Shown piece after piece: positions 19,898-59,938 of a stretch of 64,000 bases of DNA (position 1 is its first letter; the number at the start of each line of letters is the position of its first letter). Position numbers and translations under genes: made by a program. The notes beneath the pieces are model-generated. The model saw nothing but the letters and a program-made list of their open reading frames with translations, was not told the origin of the DNA and made no database searches. Source of the stretch: Zygnema circumcarinatum SAG 698-1b (Eukaryota > Plantae > Zygnematophyceae); assembly GCA_037447605.1 (NCBI GenBank), contig CM074806.1, forward strand, positions 1,302,001 through 1,366,000, written 5' to 3'.

Positions 19898-22800
19898 TTA
19901 TGCAAGGGTTGTTGAACTGAGGCAGTGGAGACGGGCAAGTTGTGGAAAAAGGTTGATGAGGAGGAACCTGAAAGTTGAATTTGGAGATGGGTGATTTCTG
20001 CAAGTCTTGACACATTCCGTGCCTTGCGCTTTGACTTTGACTTGGTGTGCAGCGGTGGCTGGGCTTGACTTCAAGGCCCTTTTGGGAGACAAGATTCGCG
20101 AGAATGCTACGGCTGAAACCTCGCCGCTCTTGGACTTCACAACAAGGGATGGGAGTGGAGACAGGGTGCAGATCTTCTTGGAGTGAGTGAACACAGATTT
20201 GAGCTTCAAGGTTCCTCCTCCGCGGGAACCCTGCTATGCCTATACGGCATTGAGCAGCTTGAAAATGGACCGTAGGGGATTCACCTGACTCAGATCTGGG
20301 AATGGAGGAAGGTGTGGAGGTGGTTATCTGTGGGCCGGGACTGTCCAGAGCAATACACTGTCTAAAAAATGCAGTCTATAGTCAAGAGTAGGTCGTATGC
20401 TGCTCCTGGTTCAGGAGTTTTTGTTGTCCTTGTATTCATTCAATGTATATTCGGGCTGGTGATTAGTATCTCATCTTGCAAGGCGCTGTCTTATGTATGA
20501 AGTGAACCAGCAAAGTTTGCTGCAGTTGAACCAGGGAAGCAAGTTATCAAGGCCCACGATTCGCAGGAGAACGGTAAAGAAGCGACTCAGGATTCAAACG
20601 GTGCGAGCACACAAACTGTCACAATACAAGTACAATCATGAACAGAACACACTTCCATGTGTACAGGCAGGCTGTGCACACTGTCCTGTTCAAGAACCAT
20701 GGTACAACGACCTACTGTTCCTAGCAAAGATAATCCTACAGCCGAATTTGGAACCCTGTACCTACCCTGTACTGAGTGTAATTATTAGAAAGGATTTCCA
20801 AAAACTCAGACAAACGCCTGCCTAGCTATTGCTGCCTAAACCTTGGCTCTGCTACATACTGCTTGGTGATGCGCCGAACGTACCAAGCCAAGCATTGTTA
20901 TAAAAGTACATTTAAAAATTGAGATGCGTCAGGTCACTTCGAGCAGGAGCGCTGTTGGCCTTCGAAGGGAGGAACGTCGTGATGAAAGCGGTGAAGTGAA
21001 ACCAGTGTGTGACTGTGAACACATTTGCAGACTTTGTAATCCCTTCCCAGAACTGCCTGAGTTATATTCCAGTGTGCCCCAAATCACCCGCGACTGACAA
21101 AATGCGTCCAGGTGTCTTTCCTCGCTGTCTGACCAGCAGACAACATTTCATGCCAATCTTACTCTCTTACTTCCAATCTTCCTCATAAATCGGCAACCCT
21201 TTCAGTCGCCTGCTCGTTTTCCATCACTTTCTCTATTTTGTTCCATCCCCGATGGAAGAGTCGATAAGTATTGTTCCCTTTTGCCTACCTTGTCCTTTGG
21301 TTCCACTCAGCGGCTCATTTGTTCGAAGCATCCTGCCTTCCTGCGCTGTTCCATCCTCGTCTTCCTCATCATCTTTCTCTTCCCCCTCATCGATTGTCGC
21401 ACTTCCGTCGTCCTCCTGTCCTCCCCCCCAGCCGCCTGCTCCAAAAAAGTCATCGCCTTCCCATTCCCCCTCCTGTTTACTCCGTAGCCTCAGCTTTTCC
21501 TTCTCCTGTACACCGAGAGCCTCGCCTTCCCACTCTCCCTCATGGCTTCTGCTATCCCAATCGCTTCTCATCCCCTTGAGGTCATGAATATCCGGGCCGA
21601 GAATGAGGCCTATCTTTCCCACCCATGACATCCTTCCTCGAGTCTTACTACTCCTCAGCCCAGTCAAGCTGCTGTACAGCAACTTCCTTCCACTCCAGCT
21701 CTCTGGCTTCTCGCCCACTTCACCTGGCCTAGCAATGCTGGATTCATCCAAGTCCCTCCTCCCTCCCTTTCCTCTATTCTGTTGATCATATCCGCCTCGT
21801 TCTATTCTCCCACGCCATCTGATTCTCCTATGGCTCCAGTTCTCTTCCCTCTGGTTCGGTGCCACCTGCAGGCCCTCAGTTGCAGTGCCGTCCTGAGCCT
21901 TCACTTGTTGCAGTGTCGCTGTCCTCGCAGGCTCACCTGCACTTTCCGAGCTCCTGCAGCAGCCACCCAAACCACGGTGAGAGCCACTCGTACTGAGTGC
22001 AGCAGCCTATCGCAGTGCTGCAGAAGTGTCCTCGTCCAAGCTCGACATCTGCTAGAACCTCTATTCGTCCTCGTGACTAGCCAGCCCTAGGTGAGACCAG
22101 TACATGTGGAAGACGTTGAACAATCCATTAGATTCAGAGCATAGCAGAAATCTAAATCTGAAAGAACAGCACTGGTCACTGGTGGCAGCTATCATAGACG
22201 ACTATCCTCCGCACGATTATCCTCAATGCAAACCAGTATTGTTAGTACTACTTGCTTTAGGACTGCACTATTGACTCCCTACGACTTCTTTCCCACTTCT
22301 CATAAAAGTGATCAAGAAGACGCCTCAATTAGGGTCGTCCGGATGCTCAACATATCTCGTGAGTACAAACACGCTGCTAACTCCCTAACAACAACTGAAT
22401 CCCAGCTTCTCCAGTGGCACTACAGCCTTGACACTTTTGTCCACCGCAACGCTGTCAGAACTCTAGAAACACTACAGAGAAAAGATAGTTGATTGAACAA
22501 AGGAAAATCTGCTTCGTCCGAGCAATGGCAGCAGCCAGTCGCATTACTGTTAGCTGACACTTTAAGCTTGTGAAAGAAAAGAAAACCACCCTATGACCTG
22601 CGAAACAACAACTCCAGGGCATAACTTGGGTAATGCAGGCTGCCAGAAAGTCTCTCATTAAAACCCTTTCAATGTATCTTCCTCACGTTGTAAAACATTC
22701 GTACAGTCGGCGCTAGACTTATTGCGGACTTCCAACCAAACTTGAAGACTTCACTTGAAAGAAGAATCCGAAGTGGAGGAACAGTATAATTCTCTAACGA

Positions 22801-23299: not shown

Positions 23300-23645
23300 T
23301 ACATTGTACGGCCCCATACGGCTCCGTACGGCGACGGCCAAAGCGGACCGCCCCGCGCGGCCGCATTCGCCGCGCGTCGCGTCAACTCGGCGTACGGAGG
23401 TTCAAACGCGCCGGCCGGCATCGCAACGCGACAAGAGGGCCTATCCGCGGCCACGTGGCAGCGCGTGCGGCAGTGTGGGTGTGTCGGCGCAGGTCAACCC
23501 GAGTCGGTTCATCCTCCGTACGGTACGGCCGATGGTCCTGGCGGGGCCGGGCGGTTGACGCGTTTGTACGGTTGGCGGCAGCCGACGGACGGTCCGGTCA
23601 ATGCCGGGGGTAGCCGTTGGGGGAGGGAGGGCCACTGTACGGACT
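23300..23645. promoter_or_regulatory. Cluster of 7 CCGTAC/GTACGG sites in a divergent promoter
   Basis: Sites at 23306, 23324 (palindrome CCGTACGG), 23392, 23516 (palindrome), 23523, 23566 and 23637, plus GCCACGTGGC at 23450. GTAC is the known SBP-domain (SPL/CRR1) core; function here is inferred. Confidence 0.6.
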
Positions 23646-23813
23646 ATACGAATTCATAGATCTGTACTTTTGTACAGTTTAGCGTGACACATGATGAGGA
23701 TCGTTTAGATTACTGTATTGCCTGAACAGGAACTAAACTGGGATTTTTGAGCTGGCACATGTGCACTGGAATGCAGGAGGGAGGGAGTGACGTAGGGAAG
23801 TGGGAGGCCAGCC

Positions 23814-25778
23814 ATGGCGGAGCCCCTCTTTCACGCGTACCTCGTGGTGGACTGGTCGGCGGCCAGCGCGCCGCGTCTGGGCGCGGACAGCATCTGGCTC
23901 GGGCAAGCGCGCCGCGCTGACTCTGCCTCCGACGAGCGGCGCGCCGCACGGAGGCGGAGAACCACGAGGACGGGCGAGCGGGAGGACGGGAGGTCCGCTG
24001 CCTCAGCGCAAGCAGGCGATGAGGAAGCCGCCTCCGGCTCAGTTTCGGTTGATCATGATTCAAGCAGAGGAGGGGGAGAAGTCTATGTTCATTCCGTCGT
24101 CAACGTGCCAACACGAGCGGCTGCTCAAGAGCATATTGTGGAGTTTGCCACCTCATGGCTGGAGAATGGCGGAAATAAACGAGCCTTGATTGGCTGGGAT
24201 TTTTCTCTAGGGTTTCCTCTCGGATTTGCTGATAGCTTGGGACTCACTGGTTGTCAAAGGCAAGAAGCGCACAGGACAGAAGCGCGTGCAGCGACTTTTG
24301 GTGATGATGATTATGGCAGCAGCCAACAATGCAAAGTAGAGGAACAGGACGTGTCACATCAAAGTGGCGCAATGGAACGTGAAAGGAAAGGTCCCCGCGA
24401 ATTCTTTTCTCAGGATATGAGGGATCATTCCTCAACGAAGGATGCGCAGCACAAAGGTAGAGTTCTTGTCCAGAGTGCAGAAGGCTGTGTCAGCGGAAAA
24501 TGGATGTTAGTCTGGGACTATTTGACTCGAGAAGTGGAGGATGCTGACAACAATGTCAACAACCGTTTTGAAGTTGCAGCAAGAATGAATGCGAAGGTAG
24601 AGGCTTTTCCGTTCTATTTTCTTGGATTGCTTTCAGCTCATATTGCAGGAAGGTCTGGATCGTATTGTAAAATGCTGGTTTCTTCAGAAGGAAACTCCTT
24701 CCTCAGACGATTCTTCACGATGATGATGGCCACCTTACCATTGCTGACCAATGTGTCCATCAACATTATGTGGACTTTTTCTGTGCAGATCTCTGGCTCA
24801 ACCTTCCCCTTTTGGGGTTGCCCTCGAGGAAAAGCGTCAGCATTTCTCAAGCCGACGAGGCCTAGTAGAGGTTCAGAGCATGAGAAAGGGCTGCCGCCTT
24901 CAGCACTCGCAGAGAGACGAGAGGCGGAGATTAGATGCAATGCTCAGTCGACTTGGAAGCTCTTCACGACTGGCGCCGTTGGCTCTCAGGTTGTCCCCTT
25001 GGCCTATTTCTAGTCAGGTGAGGCCTCTCTGCGCGAGGCAAAGGATTCCTGACTGTTGTCCATCTTAATCGTGACTTTTTGCAAAGGATCCCAAGGGAGT
25101 CAGCGAGGGAGCACATGCGACTCAATCAAGCAAGAACTTTGTGTGCTCCACAAGTTATGCTCCCTGAGTTATGGGTGGTGGATTTGTTGCCTAGCACTAG
25201 ACGCTTTTGGGAATCCCCCGAGTGCAAGCGGTGCGCCTTCATCCTTCTCTGCTCCACCATTCCGTTGTTTGGCCATTTGAGACGGGCTTTTCGGCCCCTG
25301 CACCGGCGGCACCAGGTGTCACGTCACATCTTGCTGCCAACGCAGAGGGCCATCCCCCACAGGAGCCGCGAATTATAATGGCAGAGGTCAGGAACTTGCA
25401 AGTTACACATCACCTGCTGGATCCTTTGAACTAGAGGGTAGACGGCACAGCCGGTGTGGCGGAACAACGGGAAGGCCGGTGTGCAAGAGGCGGGTTTCTC
25501 ATGCGATTCGTCCCTCGCTCCTGGCGACAGGTGTACCCTTCCTTGGTGCCTCCCGATTGCAAGGATGGAGAACCGAAAGATGCCGGCCAGGTAACAGCCC
25601 TCCCACTGCCACACCACACAGTGGTGAAGACGAGAGCAGATGCTTCTGCTATACCTCTTTTATTCAGGTGAAAGAGATTAGCGTTGCCACATTGCTGCTG
25701 CCGCTTGCACAGGCTTGGGCATTTTTTCAAACGTCAGCTTTTGGTCAATGGAGGCTTCTAGCAACTTCACTTCCTTAG
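23814..25778 (+). CDS. Bacterial-type RNase H-like/DUF429-like protein (family often auto-labelled 'CbiG' or 'MobB-related' in alphaproteobacteria), spliced
   Basis: Exons 23814-24596, 24789-24989, 25201-25386, 25531-25590 or beyond (3' end uncertain; stop at 25671 or 25778). Motifs LFHAYLVVDWSAAS.P..GADSIW, ALIGWDFSLGFP.GFA, DNNVNNRFEVA, FPFWGCP, STWKLFTTGAVGSQ|TLLGIP, VWPFETGF, AE|VYPSL, KDAGQ. Confidence 0.8.
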
Positions 25779-26328
25779 CTCCCTGAAATGGACGTAAAAT
25801 CTTTGTAATTGCACGAAGACTCAATGCTCGGATTGCAGCCAGCCTGAAGTCATGACGACATCGTGGCATGTTTCTCCATGAAGCAAAGTCTTTGCTTGCG
25901 CACATCGTAGCCGGACGGCTTGCTGAAACCCGATGTCATGTTCTTGGTAACGAAAGTTTATTGACGGTGCATATCAACTCCCCTTAGTACGTAATGATTT
26001 ATTCAAACTCCAGGCGCCGAGCGCCTTCTATCGTACACCATGTGCTTGTAAGTTGCAACTACACCACTTTACCCGCACAGCTGAAGGCTTATACAGTAAG
26101 TGCAAAAGTCAATGTCAGCATGCCCGAGTTCTCAGTACTATGCCGACATGAAAGAAAAGAGAAAGGTACGCATGGTGGTGACAAGAAAACAAAACGCACC
26201 ATTTATTTGCTTGCTTGTCTGCAGAGCGACGACAAATATGAAGTCACATTTTATTTCACTTGAAGGAAACGGGCCATACATTCTCCGAAACCCCCAACTT
26301 TGCTATGAGCACACCCCGTCCTGCACCC

Positions 26329-29300
26329 TCACTCGTCCTCTTCGGCCGCCCGCCGTCGGGCGACCACAGACTTGAAGTCCTCCTGCTCCGTGCGCAGCTG
26401 CAAGCTCAGCGCACGCCTGCGCTCCCCCCCGCACCCTGCCAGCCTCCCCCCGCCGCCAAAGCTGAGCCCGCCCACTGCCTCATGTTCGGGGTTGGTTTCC
26501 TGCGCCCTCCCCCACACCTCCTGTCAGGTGCGAAGTCGCTCTGGAGAGAGGCCTTCAAGACAATCAATATCTAATGTCGGCGACTACTCTTGACATCATC
26601 TAGTAAATCATCAAACGAAGCAGCTGCAGAACAGGTAAGAAAACGTTTTTGATCAAGAGCTAGGTGAATGGAAACAGCAGTCTGGGCGAAGTAGAAAACA
26701 CACGAACTCAATATGGGAGCTCATGGCGCCATTATCACAGGACTGAGAGGATTTGACATCAGAACCAAAAGTACACATCGAAGCAAAGTTGCCAGGAGAA
26801 GGTCAGGGCATACCGGAGTGTAGCCCTTGCCAGGTCCAATAATAAGCCGCTGCTTTTTGCTCGATGAACCACCGATGCTGAATCCGGCCTCCGATTCGTC
26901 CTTCTGTTGAATCTCCAGCATGCGTAAAACGCCAAAAAAAAACTTCAACTGAAGCACACATCCTACTTAATTAATGAAAGCATCAAGTCGTGGTATTAGG
27001 CAGTTATCCTTAATATACTTGGAGTGCTCGCTCGTCTCGCGCATTTAGCCGGAATAGGGACGACAAAGAAAAGATAAATGACACGAGATCGCTGAGAAAT
27101 CAAAAGTTGAATGGCTTCTACCTGCATTTCAACGTAGCTTTCTAAATTCAAGATGATTCTCATAAGCATTTCAAGTCTGTACCAGTGTGCCGGAGGCTTT
27201 TGTCCTATTCAGTTGAACTCCAGAACATATCGAATAACCAAAACTGCATAGAAGAGGTGCAGAAAAGTCTACCATTAGGTCTGCCCATGTGACGTGCTTC
27301 TTTCGATTCTGAAAACCCTCCCTTTTTGGTGACTTTTTTGAATAAGCTTGTAACAAACTCGCCAGGGGGTTGCTTCCTTCGCCGTCATTCTCTTCATCTT
27401 CCTCGTCGTCACTCTCTTCTGCTTGCTTTCTTTTCAAAATGCTCTTTACTGGCTTTAAAACGGGAGGTAAACAAGAATCTGGGGACTGTCCTGTCGCCTC
27501 TGAAACAGGCACTGCAGCAGACAAGACACAAACATCAACAATCAAGTGCAAACAGTGCTTGAATTCTCCCACATCCAGCTGTGGAAACCTTTTCCAATCA
27601 AATACCAAATTGACGGGGGAAGTCCCAGAAAGTGAAAAAAGCAGTCTCGAAACAATTCTCCGAGTTCTTTGACCTTATCGTCACATTTCCAGCAAAACAA
27701 CACCCATCCTTAAAAGGGGGCATCAGGGCTTGAAACAAACTTGCGCTAGTGAGTTTCTGCTCCTCCTTGGCGGAGGGTTTTTCAGCAGGTAGGCTCCTGT
27801 CTAACTCCTCTTCGTCAATCTCTTCCACTCTCGGCGGCATTATTCCCTGTTCCTCCGTGTCTCTCTCCATGTCATCTGCATCCATCTCTACCTGCAACCG
27901 AACCACATTTATTCCTTTTTTGGCCCCAGTTGAAGTGCCGGCATCGAAGAATCCTTAGGCTTCGTTCTAAGTTCAGTGAAAGATTTATCACCAGGATGCT
28001 GTCTGGCATATCTGATACAGCATCACCACCTAATACTTAGGCACAGGAAACAGAGAAGACACAATTTTTTAGCAAGCCAGACGTCGTTAGCCCTTCCTGA
28101 CCTCCACAATGTCCTCCTCTTCTAAAGTATCTTGGCGGAACAAGGCCTGCAAACGAAATGTAAAACACAAAACAACATTTAGGCACTCCACTTTTCTTAA
28201 GACCTTTGTGAGCATTCGATGATGGCATGTGGAAGCTGTCATCAGTCCCCTTCATCGTTTGAATCTAGCCCCAACAAGCATATTCCGTTGAAGCCTATTA
28301 CAGAACCCAGAAGCACAGAGGAAATGCATACCGTGACATCGAGGGCAAGGTAGTGGGAGGGCATAGGCTCCCACTGCTGAGCCATGGCTTCGACCTGCTC
28401 TGCCGTGAAGCCATGAATGTTGCGAGCAGCACAAGCCTGCTTGTTGGCGAAAATACAGCATGTCATATTCAACCAATTTGATTAGACATTGCAAAAACAG
28501 ACTCAGTCATAATATGATACACACACCATGCCCCTGAGTATCGGTGAAGGACATTCTCTATGCTTTTCTCGGAAAAAAAATAAGCTCAGGTAAGTAGAAA
28601 ACAGGCTTGAAGATTCTGCTGCAAGGTCATCAAATCCTCACAAAAACATCAAGCTTTTTCAGCAAGATTCTGGTTAACTCAACTGATCACTTCACCGACT
28701 AGGCAGACGTGCAGGAAAGTGTGGCAAAAACAGTGTAGTTTTCATGGGACATGTGTACAGCACGAATCAAAGAGAGACTAAAGTCCCAACCTTTTCAGCA
28801 GTATTGCCAGGAGTTGGAACAAACATGGAAATCATTTCAAGGAATCCGCATAGCAGCAGATCTTCCTTGCAGAACCGGTGTATGGGGGAAAGGAAATGAG
28901 AATTGGACGGCAACCACATCAAAATGAACCACAGGAATGGCTTTCACAGACACCACTAGTCTCCTAACCTATATTTAACAACTACCTGACCAACTTGAGA
29001 CAAAACTTCAAAAGTGCCCTTGAATAACCACTGTACATGACACCACTACTTCTACTGATGCAATGTCAGTTTTGCATACACAATGTTCAGGCAAAAAGAT
29101 GCGGTGGCGACTTCCCAAGGAAAAATAACTCGATAGTCTAATGCTGACTCAATTACAATTCTTGCAATACTCTGCAAAACGCTATTTTCAACTGAACTAT
29201 AGTCGCTGCCCAATTGTGCATTCGAACAGAACTTCCACAACAGCCAATGCAATGGCATAATGTGACTACCAAAAAGCTCCAACAGAGAATTCAATTTCAT

Positions 29301-57084: not shown

Positions 57085-57130
57085 ACGCGAACACGAACGC
57101 GAACGCGAACGCGAACGAATGCGAACGCGA
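57085..57130 (+). repeat. (GAACGC)n hexamer repeat, about 7 imperfect units, upstream of CYBDOM copy 3
   Basis: Direct reading. Confidence 0.85.
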
Positions 57131-57472
57131 TGCACGGAACGCCCATCTCCGAATCTAGAGGCGCCGCCGAATCCTTCCTTCCTCCGAGGTCCCATTGGCT
57201 CGCCCCGGATACCGTACGAACATCTGCCACGTGGAGGCCCCACGCGGGGCCTATGTCCACGTGGCGCCTAGAGCACAATATTGTGGGTGTCGGCGGGTCC
57301 AATCTCGCCGTCGGGTCAACGGGACGATTGCCGATGTCAGTACCGTCTGTACGAGCACTGTACGAAAAAGTAACCGTACGGACGTGAAGGCCAGTCTCAG
57401 TGTACGGATGCAAGGCCCGGCGGCCCCTGCGCGGCGGCGCCACTGTCGCTGCCGGCCGGGGGGGGAGCAGCC

Positions 57473-59938
57473 ATGGCGGCACTGGGGGGGGCCGCTACAG
57501 CGGCGCTCATGGCGGCGCTGGTTTCTGTGGCGGCTGTCAGTGGCCAGACGCAGTGCTACACGTCGTACAGCTTCGTGCCGGGGAGCAACTACAGCACCTG
57601 CGCCGTCTTGAACGACAACTCCACGCTCGCGTGGACGCTCGACAGGACGGACAACGAAAACAAGGTCCTGCACGGGCTGTTCGTCTCCGTGGCGAGGGAG
57701 AGGGGGGGATGGGTTTCGTGGGGAGTTAATCTGGAGGACAAGATCGGTGCGATGGCGCCGTCTTCTGTCCTCGCGTGCTACGGAGGGGCTTCCGGGGCGG
57801 TGCTGCAGCAGCTCTACCTATCGTCCTCTAAAGGATCAGGCGTGGCGGTAGACAACAGCACAATGTATATGGATTTCAATAGTAAAGAGTGCCTAATTGA
57901 CGGTGCATATTCCCTGGGGGAGAGGATCTTCATCAAGTTTAGCGTAATCCTTGGCTCAAAGCCGAAGTACGTGGGCGTGTACGCAAGGGGACCCACAAAA
58001 CCTGACGGTAATGGAGTTGCAGGGACCACCATTAAAAAACATTCTGAAGCACGCACTGACATCGCTCTCCATGACTTCAGCAACTTCACAGCTGTCGCCC
58101 TCAGCGAGCCGCCAGCTCCGCCCTCTCCACCCACAACCTTCCCCCCCCAGCCAGGTCCATCTATAGCGGTAAGTAACACCTCCTTCCATATATTCCCCTC
58201 TCGCACATCCTCCTCGTACAGCAAATTCAAGAGACAGCCTTCCGGAGGGTAACATAAGACCCAAATTACTTGATCAACATATCCGACATATTTTCTACCT
58301 GGGATGAGTAACCCGGTGGATTCCTTACCAGAACTGCTAGACTGGAGAGTCTCTCATAATTGTGGGGCCATGGGCGCAGCAGGGGTGCCCTCTAAGCAGC
58401 CCGTTGACTCCGGGGAAATCCTTCAGTGCGTGCTCACCATTGAGTGGAAATGCAGAGCTCCTTTGGTCATGGAGCAACGACACAAGGGCCCTCGACATCG
58501 TCTTCTCCCTGAAGCCGAAAGAAGCAGGGCAGTGGGTTGCATGGGGAGTGAACCACGAAGGCAGGGAACGGATGTATCCATCAAGCGTTTTCGCATGCTA
58601 CCCCACCTCGGCAGGGGTGAAGGTTTCGCAGTACTATCTGGCGGGAGTGGAAGGGAGTAAAGTGAGCCTCGGGGGGTTGCTGAACGCGAGCAGCATATCA
58701 TGCGATGTAGACGTCGCAACCGGAACTGTCAGGATGGCCCTCACTATGCCGTTAGGCGAGCCTCGATGGGCGACAATATGGGGCTACGGCCCTGTTGCTG
58801 ATGCCGATGCGGGGGAACTCGGCAAACACTGCAGCGACTGCGTTTACCACGCACCTGTGAAGGACTTCAGCAACTACCTAATCTTGACGCCTTCCCACCA
58901 CTCTACCAAGAGCCTCAAAATCGTAAGTGCTCCTGTGCCGTTTCCCCTTATCGACCCCCACCCCCTCCCCCCCCCCCCTCCCCCCCCAAACCGGCAACCT
59001 TCTACATTCGAGACAAGGGGTAATTGCGAGAGATTGCTAATGTAGTGCTCCTTGTGCCCGAGCAGACCCACGGCTTCCTGGGCGGCATTGGGTGGGGCGT
59101 CCTGCTGCCCGCGGGCGCTATGGTGGCGCGGTACATGAAGGGCCCGGCGGGCCCCTCGTGGTTCTATCTGCACGCGGCGGTGCAGGCGGGCGGCTATGGC
59201 CTCGGCGTGGCGGCCTTCGGCTTCGGCGTCCGCCTGCGCGCCCTCCGCGAGAGGGCTCCCGCGCACTTCGCCCTCGCGCTCGCCATCGTCGTCCTCGCCA
59301 CTCTGCAGGTCGGTCAGGGCTTGCGGAATAGGGCAACTGCATGGCTGTTCACGGCGGAAACACTGAAATACGAGGATGGTTTGAAATTGAAGGCGGGAGG
59401 GTCTTCAACGTGGAGGAACTGGGCATCGTGTGCACGCGCTGCGACAGTAGACATCAGGGTAGTCGATGTCAAGGAGGTCGACAACAGAGGCATGTCTAAA
59501 GGGCATTGGAGGAAATGGTATTTCAGATTGCTGGGGTGGCCGTGAAGCCGCACAAGAAGGCGCGCAGGCGCATGCTCTGGAACGTGTGGCATTGGGCGGC
59601 AGGATATGGCATCGTTGCGCTGAGCGTCTCCAACGTCTTCATTGGACTGCGCCTCCTCGAGGTGAGTGAGCCTGCACTCGGCTGCATTCTAGCGTGGAGG
59701 GCCTCCGTCTGCCCTCCAAATCCTTTTACCGTGCGTACAATCTTATTTCACTTATCGCAGAGCTTCAAAGGGGACTGATAAACGAAAGCATACAAACCAT
59801 CACTGAAGAGTGAATGAAGCAAAGTATGTTTTGTTGCAGGCTGACAGCAATTGGCGAATCGTGTACATCGTCATCATCTGTGTGTTTGGAGGGCTCGCGT
59901 TGCTGTTAGAGGTGCTTTCATGGGCGACGTGGCTGTAA
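57473..59938 (+). CDS. CYBDOM copy 3 (diverged double-DOMON + cytochrome b561 paralog)
   Basis: Exons 57473-58168, 58380/58383-58922, 59066-59308, 59527-59661, 59840-59938. Same intron positions and phases as copies 1 and 2; four b561 His conserved (THGFL, WFYLH, AHFAL, WNVWH). Confidence 0.9.

Follow-up and report, generated by a model that had tools for sequence, protein, structure and literature searches.

The stretch of DNA considered here, 64,000 nucleotides of contig CM074806.1 of the alga Zygnema circumcarinatum SAG 698-1b (assembly GCA_037447605.1, positions 1,302,001 to 1,366,000) and hereafter called the window, carries on its plus strand a spliced gene whose start codon lies at 23814 in window coordinates and whose product is related to a family of bacterial proteins. 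When a hidden Markov model (HMM) of that family was run over the whole window, exons 1 to 4 of this gene matched (independent E-values, i-E, from 1.6e-14 to 1.7e-3) and nothing else did; judged by sequence, the kinship with the bacterial family goes well beyond what chance would give. Our best explanation as a whole, which we hold with a probability of about 0.6, is that the gene descends from a single ancient bacterial transfer, that it encodes an enzyme of RNase H-like fold, and that the copy in the window is an atypical, trimmed one.

Boundaries were set by string search and checked for frame (Table 1). A preliminary description of this DNA, made from the letters alone, had claimed at least three GT-AG introns; there are four, all with GT-AG ends and all in phase 0, of which introns 1 and 2 are confirmed by RNA while introns 3 and 4 are predicted from their ends and from their positions in homologs. 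The same description placed one intron within AEVYP, and intron 3 does fall there by its GT-AG ends, by frame and by a donor shared with a homologous locus (L005), with no RNA junction to go with it. Exons 1 to 4 contain no frameshift and no stop, and removal of all four introns gives a computed product of 446 residues. The listed motifs, LFHAYLVVDWSAASAPRLGADSIW, GWDFSLGFPLGFA, DNNVNNRFEVA, FPFWGCP, WKLFTTGAVGSQ|TLLGIP, WPFETGF, AE|VYPSL and KDAGQ (bars marking introns), are all found in that order in the translation from 23814. The ATG stands four codons ahead of the first conserved strand, and there is no N-terminal presequence. Two low-complexity insertions are present as described, the first of them with RRAARRRR, at lengths of about 58 and 81 residues rather than 50 and 90; a third, short and rich in Pro and Ala, sits in exon 3. 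The putative last exon was accepted without an RNA junction mainly because the position of intron 4 is common to homologous loci. Intron 1 is open in frame for 64 codons, so that a prokaryote-style open reading frame call fuses exons 1 and 2 into 399 residues; the corresponding intron of one homolog (P0234) is likewise open.

Table 1. Features of the gene and its upstream flank, in window coordinates (X3, one of four RNA runs; L003 to L005, homologous loci).
Feature	Position	Strand	Description
GTAC cluster	23306-23672		9 sites, ~140-500 bp ahead of the ATG
Exon 1	23814-24596	+	261 codons; strand 1 VVDWS (Asp), TR, GWDFSLGF (Asp), NNVNNRFEVA...N, two lineage-variable insertions
Exon 1, RNA and profile support	23814-24596	+	RNA contigs 23809-24456 and 24427-24594; NCBIfam NF011066, E 1.2e-8
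Insertion 1	23913-24086	+	~58 low-complexity residues with RRAARRRR; predicted loop between fold strands 2 and 3
Insertion 2	24270-24494	+	about 75-81 acidic/polar low-complexity residues
Alternative intron, internal donor 24457	24457-24788	+	RNA joint 24454->24787 (cut +2), 4/4 runs, depth 16-26
Intron 1	24597-24788	+	192 nt, GT-AG, phase 0; RNA junction in 4/4 runs
Exon 2	24789-24989	+	67 codons: FPFWGCP, ERR, WKLFTTGAVGSQ; HMM i-E 1.6e-14; NF011066 E 1.7e-5
Intron 2	24990-25200	+	211 nt, GT-AG, phase 0; RNA junction in X3 only
Exon 3	25201-25386	+	62 codons: TLLGIPRV, VVWPFETGF, IIMAE (invariant Glu); i-E 6e-6
Intron 3	25387-25530	+	144 nt, GT-AG, phase 0, between AE and VYP; predicted (frame, flanking homology, L005)
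Exon 4	25531-25590	+	20 codons: VYPSLVPPDCKDGEPKDAGQ (invariant Asp, Gln); i-E 1.7e-3
Intron 4	25591-25667	+	77 nt, GT-AG, phase 0; predicted, position as in L003/L004
Putative last exon (exon 5)	25668-25778	+	36 codons + stop; start inferred from the common intron 4 position
Approximate 3' end of gene RNA	25821-25839	+	X3 contigs; meets the 3' untranslated region of the convergent neighbour

The RNA data are contigs assembled from four public runs of the same organism that cover the locus (X1 to X4); we take these runs to be RNA because splice joints are present in all four. Such contigs are strandless and lose rare isoforms, and they tell which forms dominate rather than which are absent. 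The junction of intron 1 appears at a depth of 26 to 79, and that of intron 2 was also recovered. With these two RNA-confirmed introns, transcription of the gene and a neighbouring gene with five spliced introns, integration into the host genome is observed directly. That the locus might be bacterial contaminant DNA in the assembly has the bacterial affinity of the protein in its favour and nothing further; against it are the spliceosomal introns confirmed by RNA, the position of the spliced, convergent neighbour within 1 kb, and a GC content continuous with the flanks. We therefore reject contamination, the likelihood of which is negligible and which the preliminary description had already thought unlikely.

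Bacterial homologs are about 290 residues long and mostly alphaproteobacterial, both in word-indexed and in exhaustive HMMER searches. The exhaustive search, over 1.84 billion representatives, returned 779 proteins at E<=1e-3 with a top score of no more than 103 bits, and the first word-indexed search returned bacterial proteins only. In a scan of species genomes at least 513 GTDB species carry the gene, the best 80 of which all belong to Caulobacter, Phenylobacterium, Brevundimonas, Hyphomonadaceae and their allies; further named members come from Rhodobacterales, Rhodospirillales, Stellaceae and Acidobacteria. The Rhodovulum bhavnagarense protein EV663_10115 may stand for the family: it resembles the window protein in the order of its motifs and in 43 of the 44 near-invariant columns through KDAGQ. 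Unlike the window protein, which has three insertions, four introns and no C-terminal module, bacterial members lack large loop insertions, are intronless, invariably finish with EEGWILG, and in many cases occur as fusions with CbiC, MobB or MoeA. The CbiC fusion (PF02570, C-terminal) is frequent, in about 70 of the top 120 matches; MobB (PF03205) is fused at the N terminus, MoeA fusions occur in the Atlas, and there is one SnoaL-like fusion.

The names that these proteins bear are misleading. Standalone members are called 'cobalamin biosynthesis protein CbiG' by NCBI and 'precorrin-8X methylmutase' by JGI, and the NCBIfam model NF011066 (PRK14495, 'MobB/unknown domain fusion protein') matches homologs over their full length, in agreement with the kinship to alphaproteobacterial proteins labelled 'CbiG' or molybdopterin-related that had been noted for this locus. 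Against the window, NF011066 scores 34 bits with exon 1 and 24 bits with exon 2, at profile positions 257-345 only and below the equivalog cutoff of 596 bits; as the window protein has no MobB part, it is a homolog of the unknown domain of that model and not an equivalog. The preliminary description was also right that this is no true CbiG: neither CbiG_N (PF11760) nor CbiG_C (PF01890) was found by Pfam scan in the window exons or in homologs, and what the family has in common with true CbiG (cobalt-precorrin-5A hydrolase) is limited to an automatic name and an occasional location in cob clusters. One CbiC-fused copy (L088 8001-9557, on ERZ25766247 contig_2) lies in a complete aerobic-type cob cluster with a separate, genuine CbiG-domain gene adjoining. 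We thus reject CbiG identity, and the presence of that separate gene marks the 'CbiG' label on standalone members as an annotation error. At E<=10 no Pfam family matched the four window exons or four full-length homologs (P0002, P0004, P0011 and P0027), a PADLOC scan for defence systems gave no match, and a profile search of PDB sequences found no relative. The family amounts to thousands of bacterial members that have neither a Pfam model nor a solved structure and are systematically mislabelled 'CbiG' or 'precorrin-8X methylmutase'.

The gene is not confined to bacteria and the window. Two further eukaryotic homologs could be named by exact look-up, in Klebsormidium nitens (GAQ85358.1, KFL_002310140; P0078) and in Spirogloea muscicola (SM000218S06598; P0099), and others lie on eukaryotic contigs from ENA, JGI and Logan (P0081/P0234, P0112/L005, P0127/L003, P0147, P0152/L004, P0198, P0235 and P0252). 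Among the matches listed in a search with a eukaryote-derived profile, confined to proteins of 241-768 aa, no further named eukaryote precedes the bacteria, which begin at rank 6. Like the window protein, the eukaryotic homologs have loop insertions at the two corresponding sites and the TLLGIPR and GEPKDAGQV signatures, and their protein records are translated through an intron placed directly behind MN(K)K|V. Splice sites were verified on three fetched loci (L003, L004 and L005): intron 1 (after MNxK/M) and intron 2 (GSQ|T(L/I)LGIP) are identical in position and phase in the window and in all three, and the intron 1 position recurs in P0099, P0152, P0127, P0081 and P0234. Intron 4 (KDAGQ|gt...ag|VRAL) is common to the window, L003 and L004, while the intron 3 donor (AE|gt) is common to the window and L005 and absent from the Klebsormidium-like loci. 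At the site of insertion 2, Klebsormidium, Spirogloea and P0081 also carry inserts, which differ in length and sequence. Basic clusters recur at the insertion 1 site in Klebsormidium (RRKSKR, KRQGRKR) and in P0081/P0234 (KPKKKVK/KPKKKLK), and this site has no basic cluster in Spirogloea and L005. The Klebsormidium and Spirogloea orthologs thus resemble the window gene in clade (see below), in introns 1 and 2 and in insertion loops, and the window gene has intron 4 in common with the Klebsormidium-like loci; they are 52-55% identical to it in conserved blocks, and both keep VRALA.HFAALD...EEGW(I/V)LG, which it lacks. Both public algal gene models look wrong, at least in part: the Klebsormidium model begins past the VVDWS strand, which the related locus L003 encodes, and the Spirogloea model has a leucine-rich repeat protein fused to its N terminus, treats intron 1 as coding and omits the exon with PFWGCP.

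For phylogeny, sequences were aligned to the family HMM and match columns kept; trees were unrooted and were built with FastTree on 201 and 186 rows and with IQ-TREE (LG+C20+F+G4, posterior mean site frequencies) on 73 rows, after removal of bacterial redundancy, of P0198 and P0147 for their shortness, and of fragments that span less than ~80-85% of columns. Every tree unites the seven eukaryotic sequences that were usable in a single clade inside bacterial diversity, with support of 1.0 and 0.98 (FastTree) and 100/99 (IQ-TREE). Resolution within this clade is limited to the three Klebsormidium-type sequences, the pairing of the window with Spirogloea being weak (71/44), and identity between eukaryotic lineages is 45-57% in conserved blocks, which implies deep divergences among them. 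The bacterial sister group shifts from Caulobacterales (FastTree, 0.89) to P0102+P0053 (FastTree, 0.83) to a CbiC-fused pair (IQ-TREE, 71/56), and we thus name no donor lineage. A single eukaryotic clade, a narrow distribution in eukaryotes and a broad one in bacteria make up the pattern of a horizontally acquired gene. Because the gene is present in hundreds of bacterial species of several phyla as against a handful of streptophyte-type eukaryotes, we infer that transfer ran from bacteria to eukaryote. The best reading of the sequences is one ancient acquisition before the split of Klebsormidiophyceae and Zygnematophyceae, followed by vertical descent and intron gain. We found no paper on the Klebsormidium gene, on eukaryotic members, or on a link of the family to streptophyte gene transfer.

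The preliminary description had seen here a horizontal-transfer candidate that had gained introns. Its bacterial affinity is borne out; what does not hold is any notion that the event was private to this genome, because orthologs in Klebsormidium and Spirogloea share introns with it and fall in the same clade. One could envision a recent, lineage-private transfer followed by rapid intron gain, and the bacteria-only outcome of the first word-indexed search, together with the 103-bit ceiling of the exhaustive one, would suit it. It is nonetheless very improbable: Klebsormidium, Spirogloea and other eukaryotic orthologs agree with the window in the position and phase of two to three introns, they make up with it the clade supported at 100/99 in which all pairs are only ~45-57% identical, and an identity of about 50% excludes cross-contamination of the algal loci from the window organism. 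Alternatively, there may have been no separate transfer, the gene being ancestral to eukaryotes, or derived from the alphaproteobacterial forerunner of mitochondria, and lost nearly everywhere but in streptophyte algae. A family centred on Alphaproteobacteria and the want of a robust bacterial sister group would fit such an origin. We consider it improbable, since very many independent losses would be required, which is less parsimonious, since streptophyte algae are the only eukaryotes named among the listed profile matches ahead of the bacteria, and since the protein has no N-terminal targeting extension. The reading that we prefer is accordingly that of a nuclear, intron-bearing, transcribed gene in a small eukaryotic clade, all named members of which are streptophyte algae; the clade would go back to one ancient transfer from a bacterial family centred on Alphaproteobacteria, with vertical inheritance since.

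The fold was tested on a bacterial homolog (P0004) as a stand-in for the window protein. An AlphaFold2 model built on a 48-sequence alignment reached a mean confidence (pLDDT) of 96.3 and a predicted template modelling score (pTM) of 0.93, and its elements run in the order E8-13, E28-33, E39-42, H47-63, E68-72 ... E228-232, H248-265 (E, strand; H, helix), an order that fits the RNase H-like core (three strands, then helix, strand, helix, fifth strand and C-terminal helix). Foldseek against AlphaFold DB clusters retrieved the family itself first, then a 'three-Cys-motif partner protein' (A0A2W7NGP4; E 6e-21, template modelling (TM) score 0.79), and models named DUF429 (E 1.9e-14, 9.7e-13 and 6.4e-11; TM 0.62-0.73); a structure search of the Atlas gave a DUF429 cluster (TM 0.68/0.75). 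The 'three-Cys-motif' model is nearer to the family than the DUF429-named ones, and this may indicate a wider superfamily. In the PDB, both Foldseek and an independent aligner matched RNase H-like nucleases only, at Z-scores of 5-7.5 and Foldseek E-values of 0.018 or worse: phage and bacterial RuvC, the RuvC domains of Cas12 and Cas9, terminase nucleases, YqgF/RuvX, the YqgF domains of Spt6 and Tex, and integrase cores. RuvC, YqgF (RuvX), terminase nucleases and Cas12 RuvC are thus the nearest solved structures, having in common with the model an RNase H-like core of ~110-165 residues; they differ in that identity is 6-15% and that the family has large extra helical elements.

DUF429 has been placed in clade D of the RNase H-like superfamily by Majorek et al. 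(PMC3985635), with which these structural matches agree. The family resembles DUF429 (PF04250) in predicted fold and topology (E 1e-14 to 1e-11, TM 0.6-0.75), in acidic residues on strand 1 and after strand 4, and in occasional fusions to nucleotide or cofactor enzymes, and it differs in sequence, identity being 13-21% and NNRFEVA, PFWGCP, WPFETG and EEGW not being DUF429 features. The model therefore supports an RNase H-like fold of clade D (RuvC/YqgF type) that is DUF429-like at the level of fold only. The assignment to DUF429-like, RNase H-like proteins in the preliminary description was sound in this structural sense, as the P0004 model, Foldseek, the Atlas and the PDB agree, and not as a match to the Pfam family by sequence. 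Four acidic residues of P0004 are invariant in the 48 sequences. In the model, D13 and E232 close strands 1 and 5, D73 comes just past strand 4 and D249 opens the C-terminal helix, positions at which RNase H-like proteins canonically have their metal ligands. The window protein keeps all four, as the D of VVDWS, the D of GWDF, the E of AEVYP and the D of KDAGQ.

On these grounds the protein could be a metal-dependent nuclease of the RuvC/DUF429 type, an assignment that we favour because all structural neighbours and the pattern of carboxylates fit it, and that we put at a little under even odds. We infer a divalent-metal-dependent phosphodiester hydrolase whose most likely substrate would be a nucleic acid, for example RNA:DNA hybrids or branched DNA; because there is no N-terminal presequence, its site of action would probably be the cytosol or the nucleus. 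Basic clusters at the insertion 1 site in three lineages point the same way, and RRAARRRR, in a predicted surface loop, is a candidate nuclear localisation signal. For the N-terminal, RNase HII-like DUF429 domain of RelZ/MSMEG_5849 of M. smegmatis, hydrolysis of RNA:DNA hybrids and of R-loops has been reported (PMC4429107, PMC7591505).

Alternatively, the family could consist of accessory enzymes or carriers for corrinoid or molybdenum cofactor (Moco), in which the RNase H-like scaffold would bind a metal and a nucleotide-linked intermediate, with a role in algae related to Moco or B12. The recurrent fusion to CbiC, in about 70 of the top 120 matches, and the MobB and MoeA fusions are what would be expected of such proteins. 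The Rhodovulum copy overlaps a MobA-like gene, and a fused copy (P0010) lies amid a full cob cluster (CobW, CobN, CobO, CobB, CobD, CbiX, the fusion of the domain to CbiC, several methyltransferases, CbiG-CobJ, CobK and CbiD). However, standalone copies in Caulobacterales, an alphaproteobacterial metagenome-assembled genome, an acidobacterial one and another lineage lie amid unrelated genes (MatE, ADH, GFO, ABC transporters), and at 80 Caulobacterales loci the neighbours are conserved yet uninformative (MatE on the opposite strand, and ADH-type and GFO oxidoreductases). Every structural neighbour of known function is a nuclease, and Rv2228c, an RNase HI/CobC fusion tabulated in PMC4429107, shows that an RNase H domain is joined to a cobalamin-pathway domain elsewhere. 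We thus regard a cofactor role as rather unlikely, and return to the nuclease as the working assignment.

Several points count against the explanation as a whole. The tree is unrooted and its bacterial sister group depends on sampling, and donor and direction are read from distribution alone. The matches to solved structures are middling (Z at most 7.5, Foldseek E at least 0.018), and Pfam DUF429 fails to match by sequence even at an E-value of 10. Assay data on relatives come solely from a DUF429 domain outside the family and remote from it, and the bacterial fusions to cofactor enzymes (CbiC, MobB, MoeA) fit a non-nuclease role at least as well.

The copy in the window is itself unusual. Across 308 bacterial sequences, 49 columns are at least 93% conserved, and the window protein keeps 43 of the 44 that lie up to and including KDAGQ, the sole change being a conservative replacement of L by V. 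None of the next five, L259, E280, E281, W283 and G286 (HMM numbering; L...EEGW..G), is present in it, whereas Spirogloea and both Klebsormidium-like loci keep all five. About 50 conserved C-terminal residues, the invariant EEGW included, are thus absent; no match to this module was found in the 64 kb on either strand by tblastn or six-frame HMM search, and alignment of the putative last exon to the family profile with hhalign placed nothing in register. The Glu of EEGW is a fifth invariant acidic position, which may be catalytic or structural. The acidic motifs had been described as intact, which is true of the four named residues, all of them present and invariant, and not of this fifth one, which is missing together with the whole C-terminal module.

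Splicing is unusual as well. A donor internal to exon 1 takes about a quarter to a third of intron 1 splicing; its use cuts out NNVNNRFEVA and shifts the frame, for a computed product of 239 residues. The junction of intron 2, seen in one run of the four, has a depth of 19.6 in X3 against ~61 for the unspliced form (~75% retained), and X1, X2 and X4 each give one colinear contig, 24787-26498, without that junction. No junction of intron 3 or intron 4 was found in the RNA contigs of the four runs, so that RNA, proposed at the outset as the means of fixing the 3' exons, establishes that the gene is transcribed and leaves those exons predicted. In X3 a contig at 25199-25839, with a depth of 68.6, is colinear with the genome across both introns. 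The 3' untranslated region of the convergent neighbour is only 15.2 deep in that run (contig 25821-26401) and cannot explain this unspliced signal; moreover, the neighbour's intron 26500-26813 is retained at 3-15% (X1, X3), and together these observations indicate that retention of introns 2 to 4 is specific to the gene. We thus conclude that splicing of introns 2 to 4 is the minority outcome in these runs. Computed products would be 335 residues if intron 2 is kept (stop at 25011-25013), 405 if intron 3 is kept (stop at 25432-25434) and 436 if intron 4 is kept (stop at 25669-25671), and among the four runs no spliced contig joins the last two acidic motifs, AEVYP and KDAGQ, to the upstream exons.

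Full-length active protein may accordingly be scarce, or the copy may be decaying. If it is a decaying (unitary) pseudogene, or a source of truncated products only, it would be transcribed and would no longer encode the ancestral enzyme. The loss of C-terminal E, E, W and G columns that are kept in Spirogloea and the Klebsormidium-like loci, the retention of introns 2 to 4 with stops at 25011-25013 or 25432-25434, and the share of intron 1 splicing that passes through the frame-shifting donor would all be consistent with decay. Yet exons 1 to 4 are free of frameshifts and stops, with 43 of 44 near-invariant columns in place, all four introns still have GT-AG ends and lie in phase 0, and intron retention may be regulatory or particular to the conditions sampled; decay is for us somewhat unlikely. 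A trimmed but constrained enzyme, favoured by the conservation of exons 1 to 4 and by the intact splice sites, is a live reading.

The eukaryotic gene is, on our reading, an anciently transferred bacterial gene in streptophytes and belongs to an uncharacterised branch of the RNase H-like superfamily. With its common introns, single clade and RNA support, it offers a well-documented case of a bacterial gene that became fixed at an early point of streptophyte history. The invariant residues, together with the assigned fold, tell directly where mutagenesis could aim, the CobH, MobB and MoeA fusions are a testable lead to function, and the comparison of intact algal copies with the trimmed, poorly spliced copy in the window gives a view of the loss or remodelling of an acquired gene. 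More speculatively, and as something of a long shot, streptophyte algae, the lineage of the window included, may have kept a bacterial enzyme of RNase H-like fold, fused in bacteria to CobH, MobB or MoeA, for an unrecognised shared step of corrinoid and Moco metabolism, or a nuclear nuclease acting on R-loops or branched DNA, that was lost or dismantled toward vascular plants, the window copy having been caught in the midst of trimming.

As to the surroundings, the gene had been said to lie under the densest GTAC cluster in the window. The cluster in question stands upstream of the ATG, reaches 7 sites per 300 bp where the window averages 0.84, and is equalled in density by one near 20626; RNA depth rises only past ~23694. 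SBP-box and copper-response elements have GTAC as their core, and as a candidate regulatory element the cluster is a lead only. Further GTAC-rich patches lie at 20626-20925 and 57126-57625 (6-7 per 300 bp). The convergent neighbour on the minus strand (26329-28437, stop codon near 26329) has RNA-confirmed CT..AC introns at 26500-26813, 26904-27272, 27512-27740, 27892-28101 and 28147-28331. No Pfam domain was found in the two of its exons that were scanned, nor in long open reading frames elsewhere in the 64-kb window. Coverage of the neighbour in X1 is 10-20 times higher over the upstream exons than over the last one, a pattern suggestive of an alternative 3' end that comes earlier. The left part of the window is GC-rich, and in it identical protein matches at chance level recur ~3.5 kb apart (4516-4611/8105-8200 and 5155-5229/8689-8763), which indicates a tandemly repeated unit.

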